From positions 44,082,001 through 44,146,000 of the forward strand of contig NW_027266286.1 of NCBI RefSeq assembly GCF_022045235.1: 64,000 nucleotides of DNA, in the 5' to 3' direction. Below are positions 35,601 through 61,551 of this stretch, in pieces (position 1 is the stretch's first letter; each line of letters opens with the position of its first letter). The position numbers were made by a program, and so were the translations under genes. Source of the stretch: Haliotis cracherodii. Lineage: Eukaryota. The notes beneath the pieces were generated by a model, which worked only from the letters and a program-made list of their open reading frames with translations, was not told the origin of the DNA and did not search any database.

Positions 35601-38600
35601 ACAACCATTGTCGGTACGCATATTTAAATACTTATATGTACAATCATAGACTACAAAATCCAAAGTTGAGTTTGCTGCAATATTCATAGGCTGTATGGTA
35701 ATACATTGCAGGCAGAAAAAAACGACAGAAATATTCAAAGAGAATGTAGTTCAAGCTTGGAGGACAACAGCGCTTGTCTATAAACGACTGTGAGGTTATC
35801 TCTGTTGCATCACAATGAGCGACATGGCGTCATAATAGTGACGTGCGATGTATAACGAAACCTTCCAAGGTTGTCTCAGTTTTGTGTAGGTGTGCCCACC
35901 CATCTTAAGCTTAAGAAGTTGCCGTGCTACATGCTTTATTATGGTGTGAACAAACTGCTTGAGCATATAGATCGACACATTTAGTTTAAAGGCTGTCGAT
36001 GATTCCGGAGAGGGACTCATCCTATTTCGCTCCACTCAGTGTGTTTGCTGACACCAACGAGTTCGCTTATTGTTTAGTCATGGTAGAATGGAGAGAAACG
36101 CTGTGTTTTCATTGTTCAGCTAGCTTGCCAGTATATTTAACCGCGCTAAATCTAACTTTTGAATCCTCGATTCCAAATTCAATTTAGCGCGGCTAAATGA
36201 TTAGCATTTCCGATTTGTACATTGCAGGAAACAAACTCACGGACAATGCCGCTCCTCACCTTGCTATGGTGCTTGAAGTAAGGCTCCTAAATATTTGAAT
36301 GCGTGAGAGAAATAACGTCCATTTGAAAAGTATTTCAGTTTAATACGGCGTGTTAACTTACACAGAAATTTATTTGCTTGTTTGATCGTTTATTTGTTGT
36401 TTAACGTCGCACTCAGCAATACTCCAGCTGTATGACGTCAGTCTTTAAATAATCGAGTCTTGACCAGACTATTCAGTCATTGACATCATGGGCATCGATC
36501 TACGCAATTGTGATACGATGCCATGTATCAACAAAGTCAGCGAGTCTGACCTCCCGATCCCGTTAATCGTCTCTTACAACATGTATGGGTGGTCTAACCC
36601 GGATCTTCGCGGGGTTTACTGTTATAGGAGCGGTTAATGTGATGCAAACCGTAGACATTAATCACTTGGATGAAACCCACATGCCCAGAAAGGGTGAACA
36701 ACAACGATCATAATTGGGATGAATGTGGGGATCGAACTCGTGACCAGATGATTCTGGCACTTCCAGGGAACGCAACTCTGCATACTTTGCTTCAGCACCG
36801 TAGATAACTTGTCTGTGCCCCTTATCTTTTAAAATAATCACAGTTGTCTGAAATTATATATTATATATTTTATTATATATTATAAGTAACATTATATCGG
36901 TTAGATTGCCAATGATTTTTCTTCACTGAAATAATTGTAAATTTGTCAAAATATATTTACAGAAACCTGTTTACAATTGACACAAATGATAATCGCTTCA
37001 TTAGGGTTTGATGTAGAAGATCAACATTCTGTCTGAAAGGGAATTATCAGTTAATGGCATTCTTCCCTTACAGCACAACACTAGTTTGAGTATTTTAGAT
37101 CTCAGCCACAACGAGTTCTGCGACAATGGCCCAAAGCTTATCGCAGCAGCACTTGGTGAGTACGCTGTTTTAACAGCTCACCATTTACTTAGGTGATGTC
37201 GGTAACGGTTTAGGAGATAACATATTAAATACGAGTATCTTCGTGATCGAACTACATTGGACAAACCCTGGGACACGACTTTTCTCACTTCTGAATATGG
37301 CTTTAAGGAAGAAGACTATTTTCCAACTTCCTTTATAGATGACCACTGTTCTTCGTGTGGCATATCAGTATTTACTCCAACTGTAACACCTTGTAACCAA
37401 ACGATACCGTCTTCTTATTGTTACAGGCAAAATTCTCAACGTTGCACGTGTAAAATATTGATTTTTTTGAATAGAAGTATCAGTTGAGGATGGTCCTGTG
37501 TTGGGAGAGGCACCGAGGCGATATGCCATTTAATTACAGATTTTTGTTATTTACTGCTGTCGTTTTTTTGCATCTTCAAGGACTCAACACGGGTTTGGAA
37601 ACATTTCGAATGAGCTGGAACCACATCAGAGGCAAAGGAGCTGTAGCCATTTGTCAGAGTTTGAAGGTAGGTTTGTGTTACAGTTGTATCTTGCAAGGAA
37701 GAAATCATCCATTATTCCTGTTACACTCATTTATTACAATCGTGATGATATTGTAATGAATAAACACATTAAGAAAACGTTTAAGGCTTCATGCGTTTGC
37801 AATTTCATGCACACGTGTTCCATCTAACGCAAACTGCTTAAAACAATAAGTTTAAGTTTAGATTGATGCATCTGCACAATGAAACATTCTTCCAGGACAT
37901 TTAGAATACAGCATTATGATTGGTCTCCAGACAACAGAGGGTTCGATTCCCACTTTTGGTGGCCCCCGCGTTTTATTGCTTGAATATTGCCAACAGCGGC
38001 GACAACACCATACTCACTCACCGGAGAGGACAGAAAACCCGACGAACAGAGTAACAGAGTGAATTGTGAAATTCAGCACTATCAATGCAGTCTGACCTAT
38101 GTCGCTACTCAACCACATACGATGACGCCATGTCTACCCTATTATTGGGTGGACTTTTGATCATGATGTCATTATAGCTGTGTGTACTTAATGTGCAAGA
38201 CCACCTGATTTTTTCTCTAGGTGGGGCTGTTTGAATAATGAATATACTTACATAATATGCACTCACAGTAATTTTATTTCCTCATATAATGATAAAAAGA
38301 ATAAAATAGCATGCTAAAATTTTGATGATTTGAGTGCAACATACGCGACTTTGGACCGATCGTCAATCGTCAAACCTTGGACTATTCATCTCACTGGAAA
38401 CTGATGACACAACACTCATCACCTCTGCCACCACCAAATAGTTAATTATTGTGTCATTATGTTCCCAATTTCAAACTCCAATCGAAATCTGTGTATTTTC
38501 TTTCAAATTCGAAATTCCGTTCGCTTCAAAAACAATGTGCAAGTATAGAATCTATGTTTGGATCTTCAAAATTGGAAACACAAGAGGTTTATCTCCGAAA

Positions 38601-55456: not shown

Positions 55457-56586
55457 CACAGATAATTTGAAAACATTGGTAATTCAGGTTTATGATTATT
55501 GCAGGGGGTGCACTGACAAAGGTAAGACCGCAAATCAAGTTTCATATTGTGAAAGAGATGGTCTAGATCACCCAACTGTTAGTCAAATTTTTTTTTCTGT
55601 TGAGAGTAATTTCAGAATAGAGGTTTTGAGACTATCCCTATGTTCCGGGATGTCCCTCGGCTGTTATGTTTATTGTGCAGACCCCCTTGTAATAGCAGGC
55701 ATTGAATCACGAACAATTACATGACAGTTTGTTAAATAACTTGTTCAACCCATCATGACAATGACTGTAATGATGGTGACGGACAAATAAATACCTTTCA
55801 TGCCATTAAAGACAAATTGTTGCTTTGTGATTTATATCTATTTTACAGCAAGCGGACTATATATAGTACGTTGAATTTTATAATCTTTATAACTTGCATA
55901 TACAAGTATGAATGGAGCTTTGATAAATGCTTCCGGGTTTGTTTATTTTTCTTATCCTATGCTTTCTGTTATCTTAAGGTAATAAGGTCTGTTCGGTTGT
56001 GTCAAATTCGGATAAGTCGAACCATTTATCAGGTCCCCAGGAATTCGAGACAACTGGATCTGGCTGTACTTTTAAAACAAATAAACGCACTATTAAATGT
56101 TAAAACATTTATTCACATGCCGTTCCATATGAATTTACGATATATCATTAATAAATGTCGACATAAAGTACACATAGTTTACTTTAAGGGTAGAGTAATT
56201 TATCAATTTCAAACCCAAACGTGTATAAGTCGGACTGGGTGTTGACAGTAAATGCTGACTTTCTACATGACCTTAATAGTTGACCTATCCCAGCCGTGAC
56301 ACGTGTCATCGCGTCCTTACCGTAAATAGCTCCAAACGTGACTGATTGTATATGACATCCATAAGACTCAATGGCTTGTCATTTATTCTCTCGCACTGTT
56401 CGAACAGAACGCCTTGTGTTTGAATTGAACAAGGACAGTGATAGTTATACGAAGAACTAGACACTAACCTTTGGGACATCGCAATATTTAGTATTCAAAG
56501 CTCTAAAACGGTTTCAGCTGATGACATTCTGGACGCGGACTTTAAAATATGAACACAACATACCCGTATCGCTTTGGATTACATTC

Positions 56587-56754
56587 GGGGCGGTCGGGTA
56601 GCCTAGTGGTTAAAGCGTTCACTTGTCACGCCGAAGACCCGGGTTCGAATCCCGACATGGGTACAATGTGTGAAGCCCATTTCTGGTGTCACCGCCGTGA
56701 TATTGCTGGAATATTGCTAAAAGCGGCGTAAAACCAAACTCACTCACTCACTCA
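56587..56754 (+). mobile_element. SINE family 1
   Basis: Near-consensus copy; TSD ~ATTACATTC. Confidence 0.9.
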
Positions 56755-57725
56755 CTTGTATTACATTCTCCCGTTGATTTCCCCAAAGGGTTCCATTTTG
56801 ATAAGACGGTATTTCATCCATCGCGAATCCCTTTAGGGTTGATCTAGTTCTGGATATCACAGAAGGGTTATTTGTCGGACAGTTGATTGATATCTAAGAA
56901 CGAGTGAATACACTTTTGGGGATCTCAGTACCTGTCCGGTCGTTTTGTTAAGTGGTCTCTATACACCATAGCCTGGTGCTGTCAGCGCGCAGTACAAGCT
57001 AGTTTCCAAAACAACAATGTAGGTCACGTACGATGGAGTAATACAATATCCCTGGTATCACAAGATGTATGTGGAATACAAACAAAACACTTGTCACCAA
57101 TTAAAGCTCGTACCACTTCACTTAAGCTTATCACATACCATGAAACAGGCTGGTGATGAAGCTGAACCTGACCAATAGAGTTGTCACATCTGTTCAGTCA
57201 GTATCAACGAATTAACCATAAGTAATGAACCTTGTTCTTTAACTCTCTTGTTGCTGGTTTGGGTGTAATCTTCACCAAATAACGCATACGTCGGAGACTT
57301 AAAATCGGCTGGTAACGTGTCGGTTATATGTAGTAGAGTGGAATCTTTATCACTTACAGCATGCATTGTAGTCTTACAAATCGGCATGAATCTATAGTCG
57401 TTATACGGGTGATGCATCAATATAGACTGTTCAGACGTTCATTTATTAAACAGAATCACATGATATCGCAGGATCACGTGATATCACAGGATGTGATTGG
57501 TTTTCATTGAGAAATGTTGACAACACTCTACACTGATGCCAAGACAAGACACTGTTGACACATGGCCTGACCGTGTCCCACGCTACTATCACGTGCTACA
57601 TTACTCTACGTCAACATGTATGTGATTTGAAAAGTGGGTCATTTGACGCCTCTGACCTGATCCAGCGCAACTCCTTGCAACGTCAGTGACCTAGGGGTGG
57701 AACAATAATAAACCACGATCTTAGC

Positions 57726-57780
57726 TGCTGAGTCATGCTAACTTGTACAATGTTATCTCGATATCTACTTAATATATAAA
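57726..57780 (+). promoter_or_regulatory. Putative promoter of the ATP-grasp gene: ARE/MARE plus TATA box
   Basis: TGCTGAGTCAT (57726-57736) is the NF-E2/Nrf2 consensus. TATATAAA is at 57773-57780. A donor CAG|GTAGGC follows at 57866/57867. Confidence 0.55.
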
Positions 57781-59382
57781 CAGAATATACTGAGAAATAT
57801 TTATTCTGAAGGAAGGTTTGACCAGAACCAGGCCAAGGAGCCCAGCAAGACTTTGACCATAGTCAGGTAGGCACTATCGGGATTATGTATATGTGAAGTA
57901 AAATATTTCTATGTTGTAACCATTTTTGTAAACGTTTATGCCATTCACTTGCTATTATGAAACTGGAAGATGTTGCTCACCTAAATGTTTGCATGAATTA
58001 TTGTAAATTGATAATGAAACCCTTATTTTGGAATATAATGCTTTGTCAATCAGAAGTGTCAGTTCACAGTAACCACCTCTGATTGAAACAGATGATTTGA
58101 CGACCGTATAACTGCAATTATTTCTTTCTTTTTTATTGTCGGGAAATAACTATATATACATTTGTAGTTTTCACTGTGGTCCTGAAATATATATATACAA
58201 TGCATGTAGGGCAATACATCCTGTTCAGAAAACGACGAGGACAGTTATTTCAACATTTTGAAACAACGGGGAGATTAAAATTTATCATGTTTCTACCGCC
58301 GACTGTGATGTCATATCCGTTTCGTAGCGTCACGATGAACGTTCATAATAGAGCTATATTTTGAACTACTTGCTATATTTACTTCATGGCTTACGAAGTA
58401 GCTGTGTTGTGCATTTACGATGCCTCTGATATATGCGAGTAATTTATGAAGAATATCAATGTAAAAAAATATTTTGAGTATATATACAGCGACAGGTTTT
58501 ACACTGCTTTACCTATATATGTGACGGCGCTCATTTGACATTTGAAATCATACGCTGATTTAAAAATATTTCAATAGGAAACCGCCCCTGAGAACTTGTT
58601 TTGCGTATAAAGTATGTTTCTAAGTTATGTTCGTTAAGTTGTAAAGATTATTGAACAACATTGGAGATGTGATCAGGTAACAGGTTATGGTATAACGTAA
58701 ATACCGCTCGAAGTGACGTTAAACCAAACTGCCGACGCACTTGTTTCAATTCAAATACCAAATCCATCACATTTATACCTTCTAAATAACACTAACTTGA
58801 TGACTGAAGTTGGTCGTAGCTTTTATACACAATATAGTTGAGTTAGATGCTGTACCTTATTAGGCTTGATTATGTTTGACACGAAGAAATAATTACCATA
58901 GGTTTTATAATAATTGTTAAAATTGTTTTGTAAATCTCATGTGTTCCTCATTTGTTCATTTACCTTAGAATATATGTTAAGTTTTATACTTCGTGCTTTC
59001 AAGTTATACCCGTCAAATATGTATTTGTTACATTAAACGTATATAAAAAAAACGTGCCATGTCCTTTACATTTGTGGCCTTTGAGGCAATGAACAATATG
59101 TAAAAATATTGCATTCAAATATCAAATGGCTTCAGTTTTACCCTTTATTAATCTTCGTGCAGGCCTTTCTGATCATGAATATAAAGAAGGTCTTCGGAAA
59201 ATAGTGCTAAGAGTCTCCTTCCGAAACCCCTTTCAGCAATAATTACTTACTGCTATTGTTAAAAGGGGAAAAAGGAAAGTAATCATTTATCAGTTCATAT
59301 AGTAATGAGTTATGCATAAGTTTTATATTTGTTGTTGTTGTTTTTTTAATCGAGCTTTATCACTTTTCAGTTTAAGAAGAAC

Positions 59383-60333
59383 ATGTCCAGTAACGGGAAA
59401 TACAAAATAATTGTCCTTCATGACAACAAGGAATGGTTTTCCTTCCTGAAAGAAGCATTCAAAGAATATGACGTCACAATGGAACAGTGGATCTCTGACG
59501 AAATAGATTTTGATGTAACCTCTGACCCCCCTAAAAATGCTGTCTTTTACAACCGATGCAGTCCATCTTCTTACGTCAGAGGACATCGCCTGTCTCTGGA
59601 TCAAGCAAGGGTAATAATTCAATGGTTGAGAAGTCACAACCGGATCGTTGTCAACGGGGAGATGGCTATTGACGTGGAGGACAGCAAAGCCTATCAATAT
59701 GTGATGGCGAAAAAGAGTGGACTCAACGTACCAAAGACAATCTTCACATCCAACCCAACTGCACAACTGATTGAAGAAAACTTTGGAAAAGATTCAGCAT
59801 TCGTTATCAAACCAAACCGAGGTGGGAGAGGCCTCAACGTGAGAAAGTTCGACAACCTAGCTGATTTCGAACACGACACGGAGCCACTTCAATCCACAAC
59901 TGGTCTCTACGTCATCCAAGCTTTCATTCCGTTGACCAGCGGACTTTTCCGGGCGGAATTTGTTGGCAAGAAATACCTGTACACCAGCAAGGCTACGGCC
60001 TGCGATGGTTTTAACTCCAACTTTTGTCCGTGTGAGGTACCACGCGACCGGTTCAAAATTCTCCCCGATTTGGAGGATCCTTTCATTGAGAACTGTACAA
60101 ACTTCTTCAGAACGACAACCCTTGAGAACGGTGCCATTGAGTACATTTATGACGCCAATGGTGTTCCATACGTCATTGACATCAACTGCAACACGGGTTA
60201 TAACACCGAGGCGGAAGATGAAGCTGGTTCCAAACAGGGTTATGTTGAAGTGGCCAAATACGTCTACAGCAGAGTGACCGAACTAAGGAAATCTCATGCT
60301 GAAAAGTTGAAGCGCTTAGATGTGATTCAATAG
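59383..60333 (+). CDS. ATP-grasp ligase, bacterial RimK/glutathione-synthetase-like family, 316 aa, intronless CDS
   Basis: Clean ORF with acceptor TTTTCAG at 59370, just 12 nt before the ATG, and AATAAA at 60411. Motifs: HDNKEW, VFYNRCSPSSYVRGH, WLRSHNRIVVNG, KAYQY, VIKPNRGGRGLNV (ATP-binding Lys plus Gly loop), VIQAFI, RAEFVG, IEYI, IDINCNTGYN. Confidence 0.9.
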   Translation: MSSNGKYKIIVLHDNKEWFSFLKEAFKEYDVTMEQWISDEIDFDVTSDPPKNAVFYNRCSPSSYVRGHRLSLDQARVIIQWLRSHNRIVVNGEMAIDVEDSKAYQYVMAKKSGLNVPKTIFTSNPTAQLIEENFGKDSAFVIKPNRGGRGLNVRKFDNLADFEHDTEPLQSTTGLYVIQAFIPLTSGLFRAEFVGKKYLYTSKATACDGFNSNFCPCEVPRDRFKILPDLEDPFIENCTNFFRTTTLENGAIEYIYDANGVPYVIDINCNTGYNTEAEDEAGSKQGYVEVAKYVYSRVTELRKSHAEKLKRLDVIQ

Positions 60334-60704
60334 TGGATGCAGGGCATCTGACCGCTGACTGTATGAGTTAAGTATAATACGATAGATCATCAACATTATC
60401 ACAGTATTCAAATAAAATTTCAACTATATCAACTAAATTGTTTGTAATTCTTCATATAATGATACACTTTGTCGAACGACGACAAAGATATGAGACACAC
60501 TGTGATGTCCTATGTTTGTTTGTTGTTGTCCATGCCTCACTTAGCTTTATTCCAGCTATATGACGGCGGCTGTAAATAATCGAATCTAGACCAGGGAATC
60601 CAGTGATCGATATCATGAGCATCGACCCAAGTCGTCAGGGTACAATTACGCGCAATCAACCACTTCACCGTGCCTGATTGGTTCTACCCCTGTTGTCAAA
60701 CATA

Positions 60705-60900
60705 CATAAAATCCATCAAACACATGTACCGGATTATATAGAATCCATCAAACATGTATACCGGATTATATAGAATCCATCAAATATCCATACCACACTA
60801 TATCAAATCATTCAAACATGTGTTTCAGACTATATACAACCAGACTATATGTAAACATACAAGTCAAATGTTCATATATCATGAAATCCATCAAACATAC
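60705..60900. repeat. Degenerate ~32-bp tandem repeat
   Basis: AATCCATCAAACA...CCGGATTATATAG repeated. Confidence 0.7.
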
Positions 60901-61551
60901 GTACATACGAAACTCAACATAAGATGTTGTTAAAATGTTCTCCGCAATTTGAGAATATTGTCAATGTCATGATAAAACTGTTCCGAGAATAGAGAACATG
61001 GTCTATCTATTTAAACAATTTGAGAAAGTAACAATTCGTCATGTTAACTTTGTTTGGGGTTAGTCCATTGTATGGATAGGTTTCAGCCAATGGATTAGTA
61101 ATCCCCTCAACCATGACCTATGTGCTTATATAAGATAGCTACGCGCTAAATCGCAAAGTGTTCATTTCACGACAAAACATTGTTCTATCATGACGTCATT
61201 TCTTGAGATTCCAACATGCGTTCGCAACTTGATGACGTCATGTATTGGACGACGTTACTAGCCCCTATCTCACATTCACGAATGAACACGATTTAACGTT
61301 TTTCCTTAAATCGTGTTAGAACGTATGAAGGTCGCGCACTCATTCGTGTTCATTCGTGCCTCGTACCATCAGCATAGGTTGTTGGGGACCAAATTTAACC
61401 CGGAATCCCAACAGGATGGGATATATTTGGAAAATATATGTACCTTCACATTAACTTTGCTGAAAGTGTAAAGTATGATGTGATTCTTGTTCGATTATTG
61501 GAGTGATGCTATTGATTCATTCATGATAACATCATACACAACAATAACAAG

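Follow-up and report, generated by a model that had tools for sequence, protein, structure and literature searches.

We describe a gene of the abalone Haliotis cracherodii which is probably best explained as a real abalone gene for an ATP-grasp ligase, belonging to a single old clade of animal genes and with a likely ancient bacterial source. It was found in a window of 64,000 nucleotides (the whole stretch of DNA that was analysed), which is situated at 44.1 Mb of a contig of chromosome size; the genome has 1.18 Gb in 80 contigs. The features of the locus, in positions of the window, are as follows.

57499 to 57866, plus strand: exon 1, non-coding 5′ UTR, from contigs of sequencing runs X1 and X3; the 5′ limit is a lower bound
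57867 to 59370, plus strand: 5′-UTR intron of 1504 nt, GT..AG, GC 0.325; contains the repeat at 57987 to 58127
57987 to 58127: dispersed host repeat inside the 5′-UTR intron, with at least 233 first-look candidates genome-wide
59371 to 60466, plus strand: exon 2, comprising the complete CDS between 12 nt of 5′ UTR and the 3′ UTR; 3′ limit approximate
59383 to 60333, plus strand: CDS of 316 aa, predicted ATP-grasp ligase made up of a pre-ATP-grasp N-domain, a central and a C-terminal domain; K102, K143, Q179, E253, D266 and N268 of the product are conserved
60411 to 60416, plus strand: AATAAA, candidate polyadenylation signal, from the sequence; transcript contigs end close by
60525 to 60665, no strand assigned: dispersed host repeat of high copy number, in the 3′ flank, with at least 1656 first-look candidates spread over many chromosomes
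61089 to 61200: dispersed host repeat further out in the 3′ flank

The gene is a genuine, transcribed Haliotis nuclear gene. The splice from 57866 to 59371 that had been predicted in an earlier note on this DNA was seen in RNA-like contigs of two runs from two organisms, X1 (organism A) and X3 (organism B). In the read layout the joint appears as 57862->59367 with a skip of 1504 and GT..AG ends, which corresponds to 57866|59371 when the cut is moved by +4. The donor is CAG|GTAGGC at 57866|57867, while the acceptor (...ttttcag|) ends at 59370, 12 nt before the ATG. One X3 contig of 1185 nt connects 57720-57862 with 59367-60408. Exon 1 is represented in X1 by a contig at 57499-57862 (depth 46 versus a background of about 5-7) and in X3 by a contig at 57720-57862, and both run into the region from 59367 onwards. 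The depth in X1 is about 1000 in the CDS versus about 7 in the intron, a ratio of about 150:1, and it is from this contrast and the splice that the RNA nature of the runs, tagged 'RNA?' by guess, was deduced. Host transcription and processing are evident from these data.

A TATA box at about 57774 had been taken for the promoter, but it is rejected as the sole promoter because the transcript contigs start upstream of it, at 57720 in X3 and at 57499 in X1. The proposed AATAAA is compatible with the ends of the transcript contigs at 60408 (X3) and 60466 (X1), which do not show true transcript ends. The 316-aa ORF is intact and intronless, as had been described, and forms a single coding exon; other long ORFs of the stretch exist only as out-of-frame or antisense overlaps of it. 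Host repeats had been reported on both sides of the gene. This holds for the 3′ flank, where two were found, but the repeat at 57987-58127 is intronic and not upstream of the gene. A scan of 56500-61500 against Rfam gave no match. Exon 1 contains an ARE-like element.

These data also refute the reading as a bacterial contaminant fragment or a chimeric contig misassembled into the abalone genome, to which we assign practically no probability. The protein family is of bacterial type, as such a reading would have it, but the transcripts use a spliceosomal intron, and a host repeat lies within this intron as well as others in the flank. In the independent, DNA-like run X18, flank, intron and CDS are evenly covered at 26-45x, and the check for a coverage break that had been suggested revealed none across gene, intron and flanks. 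The repeats in the 3′ flank reach read depths of 1e4 to 6e5. A tandem paralogue is found 80 kb away on the same chromosome, and orthologues in other animals reside on scaffolds of 2.4-63 Mb. Together, the chromosomal setting, the even depth in X18 and the host repeats place the gene in the host chromosome.

The coding exon is more conserved than the intron: the divergence from related abalone data is 1.3-1.9% versus 4.6-4.8% (three runs). The two abalone paralogues are old, with saturated dS and a dN of 0.326, and their CDS are identical in GC and GC3.

According to its predicted structure, the abalone protein has an ATP-grasp fold of the LysX/ArgX/RimK kind, with the ATP-binding lysine K143 and the Mg2+ ligands retained. 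The AlphaFold model of the 316-aa protein (pLDDT 94.4, pTM 0.91) comprises the three domains of ATP-grasp enzymes, which hold the nucleotide between the central and C-terminal ones. Its top matches in Foldseek are ArgX, LysX, RimK and PsnB (E 1e-15 to 1e-14, TM 0.63-0.72), and at least 500 ATP-grasp chains of the PDB are matched at E<=1e-3, the top ones with a probability of 1.00. A structure search of the Atlas gave TM 0.88-0.89 to RimK-like clusters. When the single abalone protein was compared to the PDB by phmmer, no match was obtained; solved structures were reached by profiles only, the family profile matching ArgX at 6e-12 and RimK at 3e-11. K143 aligns with the lysine of ArgX and AMdnB, the abalone 'VIQAFI' with the 'VQEYI' hinge motif, and E253 plus D266-x-N268 with the D...E-x-N of AMdnB. 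In a set of 50 family members, each of the positions assigned to the ATP-binding lysine, the hinge and the Mg2+ ligands is either invariant or conserved to 90% or more. The motif order listed in the earlier note is real and mostly family-wide, with S60, S62, R66, K143, E253 and N268 invariant or nearly so.

By sequence comparison, the abalone protein belongs to an uncharacterised family which is claimed by no curated model. A family search among 1.84 billion representatives yielded 726 at E<=1e-3, and a genome search with a 13-sequence alignment led to at least 565 bacterial species loci. The large Atlas clusters of the family are exclusively bacterial, and so are the clusters found when a neighbouring sequence (P0061) was looked up. 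The claim that this is a RimK/glutathione-synthetase-like ATP-grasp family of overwhelmingly bacterial type is thus upheld. Homologues occur in many cultivable bacteria (Bacillota, Idiomarina, Planococcus). The bacterial members have been automatically named 'alpha-L-glutamate ligase'. Protist members are sporadic, and named eukaryote members come from five genera only. Our literature search did not find a paper on this ATP-grasp family in animals.

Every curated family cutoff is missed by the abalone protein. For TIGR00768 (RimK) it scores 30.9 bits versus a cutoff of 143.4, with bacterial members at 50-68 bits, and for TIGR02144 (LysX/ArgX) 21.8 bits versus 275.6, so that it does not qualify as a LysX/ArgX equivalog. 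PF08443 has no match to the abalone protein at E<=1, while 35 of 50 family members match at E<=0.01 (best E 2.8e-10). It was also correctly stated that the protein is not one of the usual animal ATP-grasp enzymes, as none of their Pfam families reaches threshold. The animal RIMKLA/B, glutathione synthetase, carnosine synthase, synapsin and tubulin-tyrosine ligases share the superfamily fold (synapsin 1pk8 is at Foldseek rank 46, and Pfam TTL has a trace match to the abalone protein with E 0.11), but the nearest relatives of the abalone protein form a separate bacterial/protist family.

The closest well-studied systems are bacterial-type ligases. LysX/ArgX, the ligases of the LysW amino-group carrier protein (3vpb, 3vpd, 1uc8, 5k2m), provide the best profile match (6e-12) and the best structural matches (E 1.6e-15, TM up to 0.72), and their hinge 'vQEYI' and Lys loop align with the abalone family. 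However, the identity is only 15-16%, the equivalog cutoff is far off, and bacterial homologues lack a LysW-like neighbour. RimK, the ribosomal protein S6 poly-alpha-L-glutamate ligase (4iwx, 5zct, 7qyr), has the same three-domain fold (TM 0.66-0.70) and a profile match of 3e-11 over the central domain, and its two ATP-binding lysines are spaced as in the abalone family. It differs in that the identity is only 13-17%, that the abalone family possesses an invariant N-domain motif of its own (HxNxxW ... NRxSxSxxxR), and that bacterial family members have, after 'CP', a Cys-rich insert that the animal members lack; nor was a RimA/RimB or S6 context seen in the family of the abalone protein.

By analogy with ATP-grasp ligases, we infer an ATP-dependent carboxylate-amine ligase activity. 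The enzyme, which would be cytosolic, would use ATP to phosphorylate a carboxylate; an amide bond would arise when an amine, most probably an amino acid, attacks the resulting acyl-phosphate. The substrate would be held by residues N15, W18, S60, S62 and R66 of the N-domain, which are invariant. This putative chemistry is read from the fold and the residues only. A function other than amide ligation on an ATP-grasp fold, be it that of a kinase of the ITPK1 or synapsin type or that of a graspetide-type peptide macrocyclase, is rather unlikely. The family profile also matches inositol-trisphosphate 5/6-kinase 1z2n (2.5e-5) and MvdD/MdnB-type enzymes, and the invariant Ser-x-Ser-x3-Arg could bind phosphate. 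Graspetide macrocyclases (PsnB 7drp, AMdnB 7m4s, PruB 9bou) rank high in Foldseek, with PsnB second, and AMdnB is the best and sole PDB match of a gastropod-only profile (5e-5). However, in both sequence and fold the protein matches the LysX/ArgX/RimK amide ligases most strongly and most often, and the macrocyclases have only 11-17% identity, their cutoffs (TIGR04187/04184/04185) being missed by more than 300 bits. In addition, no conserved precursor-peptide gene was found next to the bacterial members.

The gene neighbourhood of 80 bacterial loci does not have a family-wide partner, and the context, which is not conserved, offers no firm hint at function. Catalase, monooxygenase and disulfide-reductase genes adjoin some bacterial members. 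Neither a LysW carrier or lysine/arginine biosynthesis cluster nor rimA/rimB-type neighbours were seen near these 80 loci. A luciferase-like monooxygenase recurs beside the family gene in 9-11 loci, in Bacillota only. With the catalase, monooxygenase and disulfide-reductase neighbours and the ARE-like element of exon 1, a role in redox or stress metabolism is possible, as a speculation.

Animal members were found in Haliotis, Batillaria, the flatworm Macrostomum lignano and the amphioxus species Branchiostoma floridae and B. lanceolatum, a distribution which is a lower bound, since only 30 of the best 150 hits bear names. A search of the named database with a profile of the animal clade revealed no further named eukaryote among the matches listed. 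The identity is 41% for amphioxus (1e-86) and 33% for Macrostomum. The abalone gene, its tandem paralogue and the genes from Batillaria, Macrostomum and Branchiostoma form one clade (UFBoot 100 / SH-aLRT 99), which was recovered in 100% of 200 bootstrap trees; it sits on a long common stem and contains no bacterial sequence. Exclusive characters are also shared. All named animal members have a linker of exactly 7 residues, which is not found elsewhere among 342 family members (P0007 has 3). Cys59 and TGLY, again exclusive among the 342, are common to gastropods and Macrostomum, while amphioxus has T59 and NGLY at these positions.

From these comparisons, the animal members appear to descend from one ancestral gene that is older than the divergence of protostomes and deuterostomes and later disappeared from most lineages: a single animal clade with exclusive characters leads to the conclusion that the gene predates this split and was lost many times. 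The acquisition specific to the abalone lineage that had been proposed is therefore not supported, as the relatives in Batillaria, Macrostomum and Branchiostoma share both the clade and its exclusive characters. The gene is not restricted to Haliotis or to gastropods, the Macrostomum and Branchiostoma genes of the clade being orthologue-like.

We consider it highly improbable that the gene passed recently from a bacterium to the abalone or gastropod lineage and then gained the intron and the polyadenylation signal. Such a transfer would fit the overwhelmingly bacterial nature of the family, the CDS without intron and the small number of annotated animal members; moreover, a family member (L039) is present in Vibrio halioticoli, a bacterium of the abalone gut. 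However, L039 has only 36% identity and falls into an ordinary gammaproteobacterial clade, and no bacterium exceeds 38% identity. Also at odds with a recent transfer are the grouping of amphioxus and Macrostomum with the gastropods, the characters that their proteins have in common, and the paralogue pair with its saturated dS and identical GC and GC3. Any transfer would have to be older than the bilaterian radiation, and the intron and polyadenylation signal are then ordinary features of an old animal gene, not signs of recent domestication as had been suggested.

Molluscs, flatworms and cephalochordates are very unlikely to have received the gene by separate transfers, be it from one closely related, unsampled donor lineage or from animal to animal. 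The distribution over three distant phyla is extremely patchy, and the identity between phyla (33-41%) is hardly above that to the best bacteria. However, among the best 150 of the 726 hits no non-animal sequence falls inside the animal clade, and the character distribution fits the species tree, with TGLY and Cys59 in Spiralia and NGLY and T59 in amphioxus. At least three events would be needed, versus one gain plus losses.

For the ultimate source of the animal gene, sequence comparison gives a slight preference to ancient horizontal transfer, by which a pre-bilaterian ancestor would have received it from a bacterium. Of the horizontal transfer proposed in the earlier note, the bacterial-type family and a plausible bacterial source thus stand, but the animal genes form one old clade. 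This clade has a long stem within a polytomy; when the tree is rooted with an outlier, which is a sequence within the family and not a true outgroup, the base is occupied by bacterial lineages and the animals fall within a later radiation. A vertical eukaryotic history is less likely, but a grouping of animals with Paramoeba is not rejected and some nearby sequences look eukaryotic. According to this alternative, an old eukaryotic gene (e.g. of the Amorphea ancestor) was passed vertically to animals with massive loss and without any transfer into them. A transcript of Paramoeba atlantica (Amoebozoa) is a family member, and holding animals and Paramoeba together gave a p-AU of 0.71 in the AU test, even beating a short free search. 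Furthermore, in high-GC metagenome loci, homologues that bear an insert adjoin a GH3 gene broken up as though by an intron; such DNA looks eukaryotic. However, the Paramoeba sequence was taken from a transcriptome, which may contain bacterial contaminants, and the careful tree does not join the animals with the Paramoeba group. The exclusively bacterial large clusters, the few eukaryotic genera and the basal bacterial lineages under the outlier root also speak against a vertical history. Routes of origin other than these two are unlikely.

A patchy distribution of an enzyme of bacterial or microbial type in bilaterians has been explained before by old transfer plus gene loss, for alpha-amylase (PMC7003070), which is a different enzyme family. 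For the ATP-grasp gene we tentatively envisage a bilaterian enzyme lineage which would have been captured from bacteria before the protostome-deuterostome split, would have persisted under selection for over 500 million years in a small number of marine or aquatic lineages (abalone and other gastropods, a flatworm and amphioxus) and may make an amide-linked metabolite or modify a protein or peptide.

In summary, the story of a recent horizontal transfer is replaced by that of an orphan enzyme of bacterial type, which seems to have been present already in the bilaterian ancestor and to have survived in a handful of lineages. This provides a clean case for studying how genes of bacterial type are retained and lost in animals over long times and points to an enzyme family of hundreds of bacterial species and several animals. 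Its function is directly testable, since two of the animals, Macrostomum and amphioxus, are used in the laboratory and many bacteria with homologues can be cultivated.

An intact single-exon CDS of 316 aa, preceded by a 5′-UTR intron and followed by a polyadenylation signal, had been described in the earlier note, and all of these elements are present in the sequence.

Elements of the gene in the window:
57866/57867, plus strand, consensus splice donor (CAG/GTAGGC)
up to 59370, plus strand, polypyrimidine/AG acceptor ending 12 nt 5′ of the ATG
59383..60333, plus strand, intact CDS of 316 aa
60411-60416, plus strand, AATAAA

Logan contigs of four public sequencing runs were aligned to window positions 57000-61200. 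The aligned joint 57862 to 59367 skips 1504 nt and, with the cut shifted by +4 to GT..AG, corresponds exactly to the predicted joint 57866/59371. It was found in two of the runs, X1 and X3, which are from differently coded organisms and studies. One X3 contig of 1185 nt joins 57720-57862 to 59367-60408 and thus contains the complete CDS together with the 5′ exon and the greater part of the 3′ UTR. Word depth in X1 is ca. 1000 in the coding exon, ca. 46 in exon 1 and ca. 7 in the intron; by this contrast the X1 material is RNA-like, its run type being a guess.

Contig ends mark transcript limits only approximately, both 5′ and 3′. Exon-1 contigs start at 57720 (X3) and 57499 (X1), upstream of the TATA box at ca. 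57774 that had been proposed as promoter, so that transcription does not start from this box alone. At the X1 limit, window positions 57470-57501 contain an E-box that is palindromic, 'ATCACGTGAT' (core TCACGTGA), as well as a CCAAT box in inverted orientation ('GATTGG'); these may mark the real, TATA-less promoter. An ARE-like element GCTGAGTCA (57726-57737) lies within exon 1 as transcribed in the X1 and X3 contigs, not upstream of the start. At the other end of the gene, a contig of X4 (organism C), with 2 differences over 860 nt, departs from the window at 60280, so that the C-terminal tail (60280-60333) differs, and the Haliotis rubra protein has a different end from residue 307 onward. 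The variable tail could reflect an alternative 3′ structure or lineage-specific changes.

A contaminant or chimeric contig is excluded. In X18, which is DNA-like, coverage is even (26-45x, ca. 95-98% identity) from the flank through exon 1, the intron and the CDS to the 3′ flank. The window spans 44.08-44.15 Mb on a contig of chromosome size (assembly of 1.18 Gb in 80 contigs). In addition, dispersed host repeats occur in the intron and in the 3′ flank. The putative SINEs reported on both sides of the gene correspond to dispersed repeats, the first of which resides inside the intron.

Dispersed host repeats:
57987-58127, in the intron, at least 233 first-look candidates on many chromosomes
60525-60665, in the 3′ flank, likewise spread over many chromosomes, with at least 1656 first-look candidates

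Elsewhere in the window, strand composition is strongly biased, with a GC skew of +0.65 at 1-2000 and of -0.47 at 38001-40000, the latter coinciding with a minisatellite.

The best protein matches are from Haliotis rubra (LOC124269584, 93% identity) and H. rufescens (LOC124110294, 58%). The latter is almost identical not to the query but to a second intact copy of 306 aa in the abalone genome (L002 1492-2412; C23:44221897-44222799), which lies 80 kb further downstream in the same orientation and shows 58% identity to the query. A partial third copy of ca. 46 residues (L003, C23:44222999-44223136) follows ca. 200 bp after the L002 stop and duplicates residues 33-78 of the L002 N-terminal region. 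The abalone genome thus carries two old paralogues, the query and L002, with a dN of 0.326 and saturated dS between them. L002 also has a pyrimidine-tract/AG acceptor directly 5′ of its ATG and a GTAAGT donor ca. 390 nt upstream, which suggests that the 5′-UTR intron is probably older than the duplication.

No curated model claims the abalone protein: Pfam gives only sub-threshold ATP-grasp traces, and with NCBIfam rimK_fam it obtains 30.9 bits, below the cutoff of 143.4, which the bacterial relatives (50-68 bits) do not reach either. An AlphaFold model from a 50-sequence alignment (pLDDT 94.4, pTM 0.91) was matched by Foldseek to ArgX, LysX, RimK, PsnB, DcsG and Ddl (E 1e-15 to 1e-13, TM 0.63-0.72, 11-17% identity), and the family sequence profile matches ArgX (6e-12) and RimK (3e-11). 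Profile alignments place K143 at the ATP-binding lysine, "VIQAFI" at the hinge, and E253 and D266-x-N268 at the Mg2+ ligands. These residues and N15, W18, S60, S62 and R66 of the N-domain are invariant or at least 90% conserved in 50 members. The suspected RimK/glutathione-synthetase-like type is borne out by this fold and these residues. Compared with related data in three runs, the coding exon differs by 1.3-1.9% while the intron differs by 4.6-4.8%, a ca. 3-fold slower change. From fold, catalytic residues and slow coding-exon evolution we predict that the protein is catalytically active as an ATP-grasp enzyme and would most likely join a carboxylate to an amine via an acyl-phosphate, as established for ATP-grasp ligases.

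When 1.84 billion representatives were searched exhaustively with phmmer, 726 relatives were obtained at E≤1e-3 (60 at E≤1e-30); the large Atlas clusters nearest to the abalone protein are all bacterial. In a pattern scan that took one genome for each bacterial or archaeal species, at least 565 loci were confirmed, all with 31-38% identity to the abalone protein; bacterial carriers include SAR11, many Bacillota, Saprospiraceae, Idiomarina, Burkholderiaceae and Vibrio halioticoli. The last is associated with the abalone gut, but its member (strain NBRC 102217, 36% identity) groups with Idiomarinaceae, apart from the abalone gene, and is therefore ruled out as recent donor. Gene neighbourhoods of 80 bacterial homologues show no conservation. 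The sole recurrent co-oriented neighbour is a luciferase-like monooxygenase immediately upstream in 9-11 Bacillota loci (at ca. 2900-4000 in L023, L036, L047, L055, L057, L058, L059, L070 and L076); a small number of catalases and disulfide reductases is present as well. As no carrier protein or precursor peptide is prominent around these 80 homologues, no substrate is assigned to the family. The literature searched contains no report of animal members of this family.

Members were also found in Branchiostoma floridae (P0008/P0277) and B. lanceolatum, on chromosomes of 26-30 Mb, in the flatworm Macrostomum lignano (P0019, on an 838-kb contig) and in a transcript of the amoebozoan Paramoeba atlantica (P0013). 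The abalone protein shows 41% identity to that of amphioxus over the full length (1e-86) and 33% to that of Macrostomum. Trees were computed with FastTree (166-168 rows) and IQ-TREE (LG+C20+F+G4, PMSF); of the 726 matches they include the best 150, 30 of which carry names, so that the list of animals is a lower bound. In both, all animal sequences, including two Batillaria proteins, form one clade together with three further sequences. In the completed thorough search this clade has UFBoot 100 and SH-aLRT 99, is recovered in all 200 bootstrap trees (100%) and has a stem of 0.85 substitutions per site. Mere long-branch attraction is rejected by exclusive characters among 342 aligned members. 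A linker of exactly 7 residues follows the invariant "CP" in animal sequences alone, among them amphioxus, Macrostomum and the named gastropods. Bacterial members have a Cys-rich insert ("CPADxC...CP"), which is missing from the animal proteins. Cys59 and "TGLY" are restricted to gastropods and Macrostomum; amphioxus has T59 and "NGLY" at these positions, as expected if the split of Spiralia and Deuterostomia came after acquisition of the gene. Clade and characters together indicate that the gene was already present in the bilaterian ancestor and has since been lost in most lineages. The model of an acquisition by abalone followed by domestication thus lacks support, and a recent horizontal acquisition is rejected.

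The distribution in animals is patchy, as the earlier note had anticipated, but in the tree of the best 150 matches the animal clade nests inside no named bacterial group. With the most distant outliers of the family as root, Calditrichaeota and Zixibacteria lineages, both bacterial, branch off first, and the animals share a later polytomy with a protist-like group and the main groups of bacteria. We therefore favour what would be an ultimately bacterial origin, and an ancient transfer into a pre-bilaterian ancestor is somewhat more likely than not. That the gene is an older eukaryotic one is possible but clearly less probable: the bacterial base of the outlier-rooted tree speaks against it, while an AU test does not reject a clade of animals and Paramoeba (p-AU 0.71), the constrained tree having even scored better than a short free search. 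The same reading draws on homologues from metagenome contigs with a GC content of 0.69-0.70 (L145, L151, L090, L095), which carry, at the site of the Cys-rich loop, an in-frame low-complexity insert of ca. 550 nt. The neighbours in L151 are COQ7 and a GH3 glycosidase whose N- and C-domains are in separate ORFs with a microsatellite between them, as if split by an intron, and this DNA looks eukaryotic, possibly algal. Multiple or animal-to-animal transfers we consider improbable.

In summary, ancient transfer being the preferred reading, this is a real, expressed and conserved orphan gene of bacterial type for a predicted ATP-grasp ligase. Its interest lies in an ancient bacterial-type gene that has been kept patchily across Bilateria, with an orphan chemistry.
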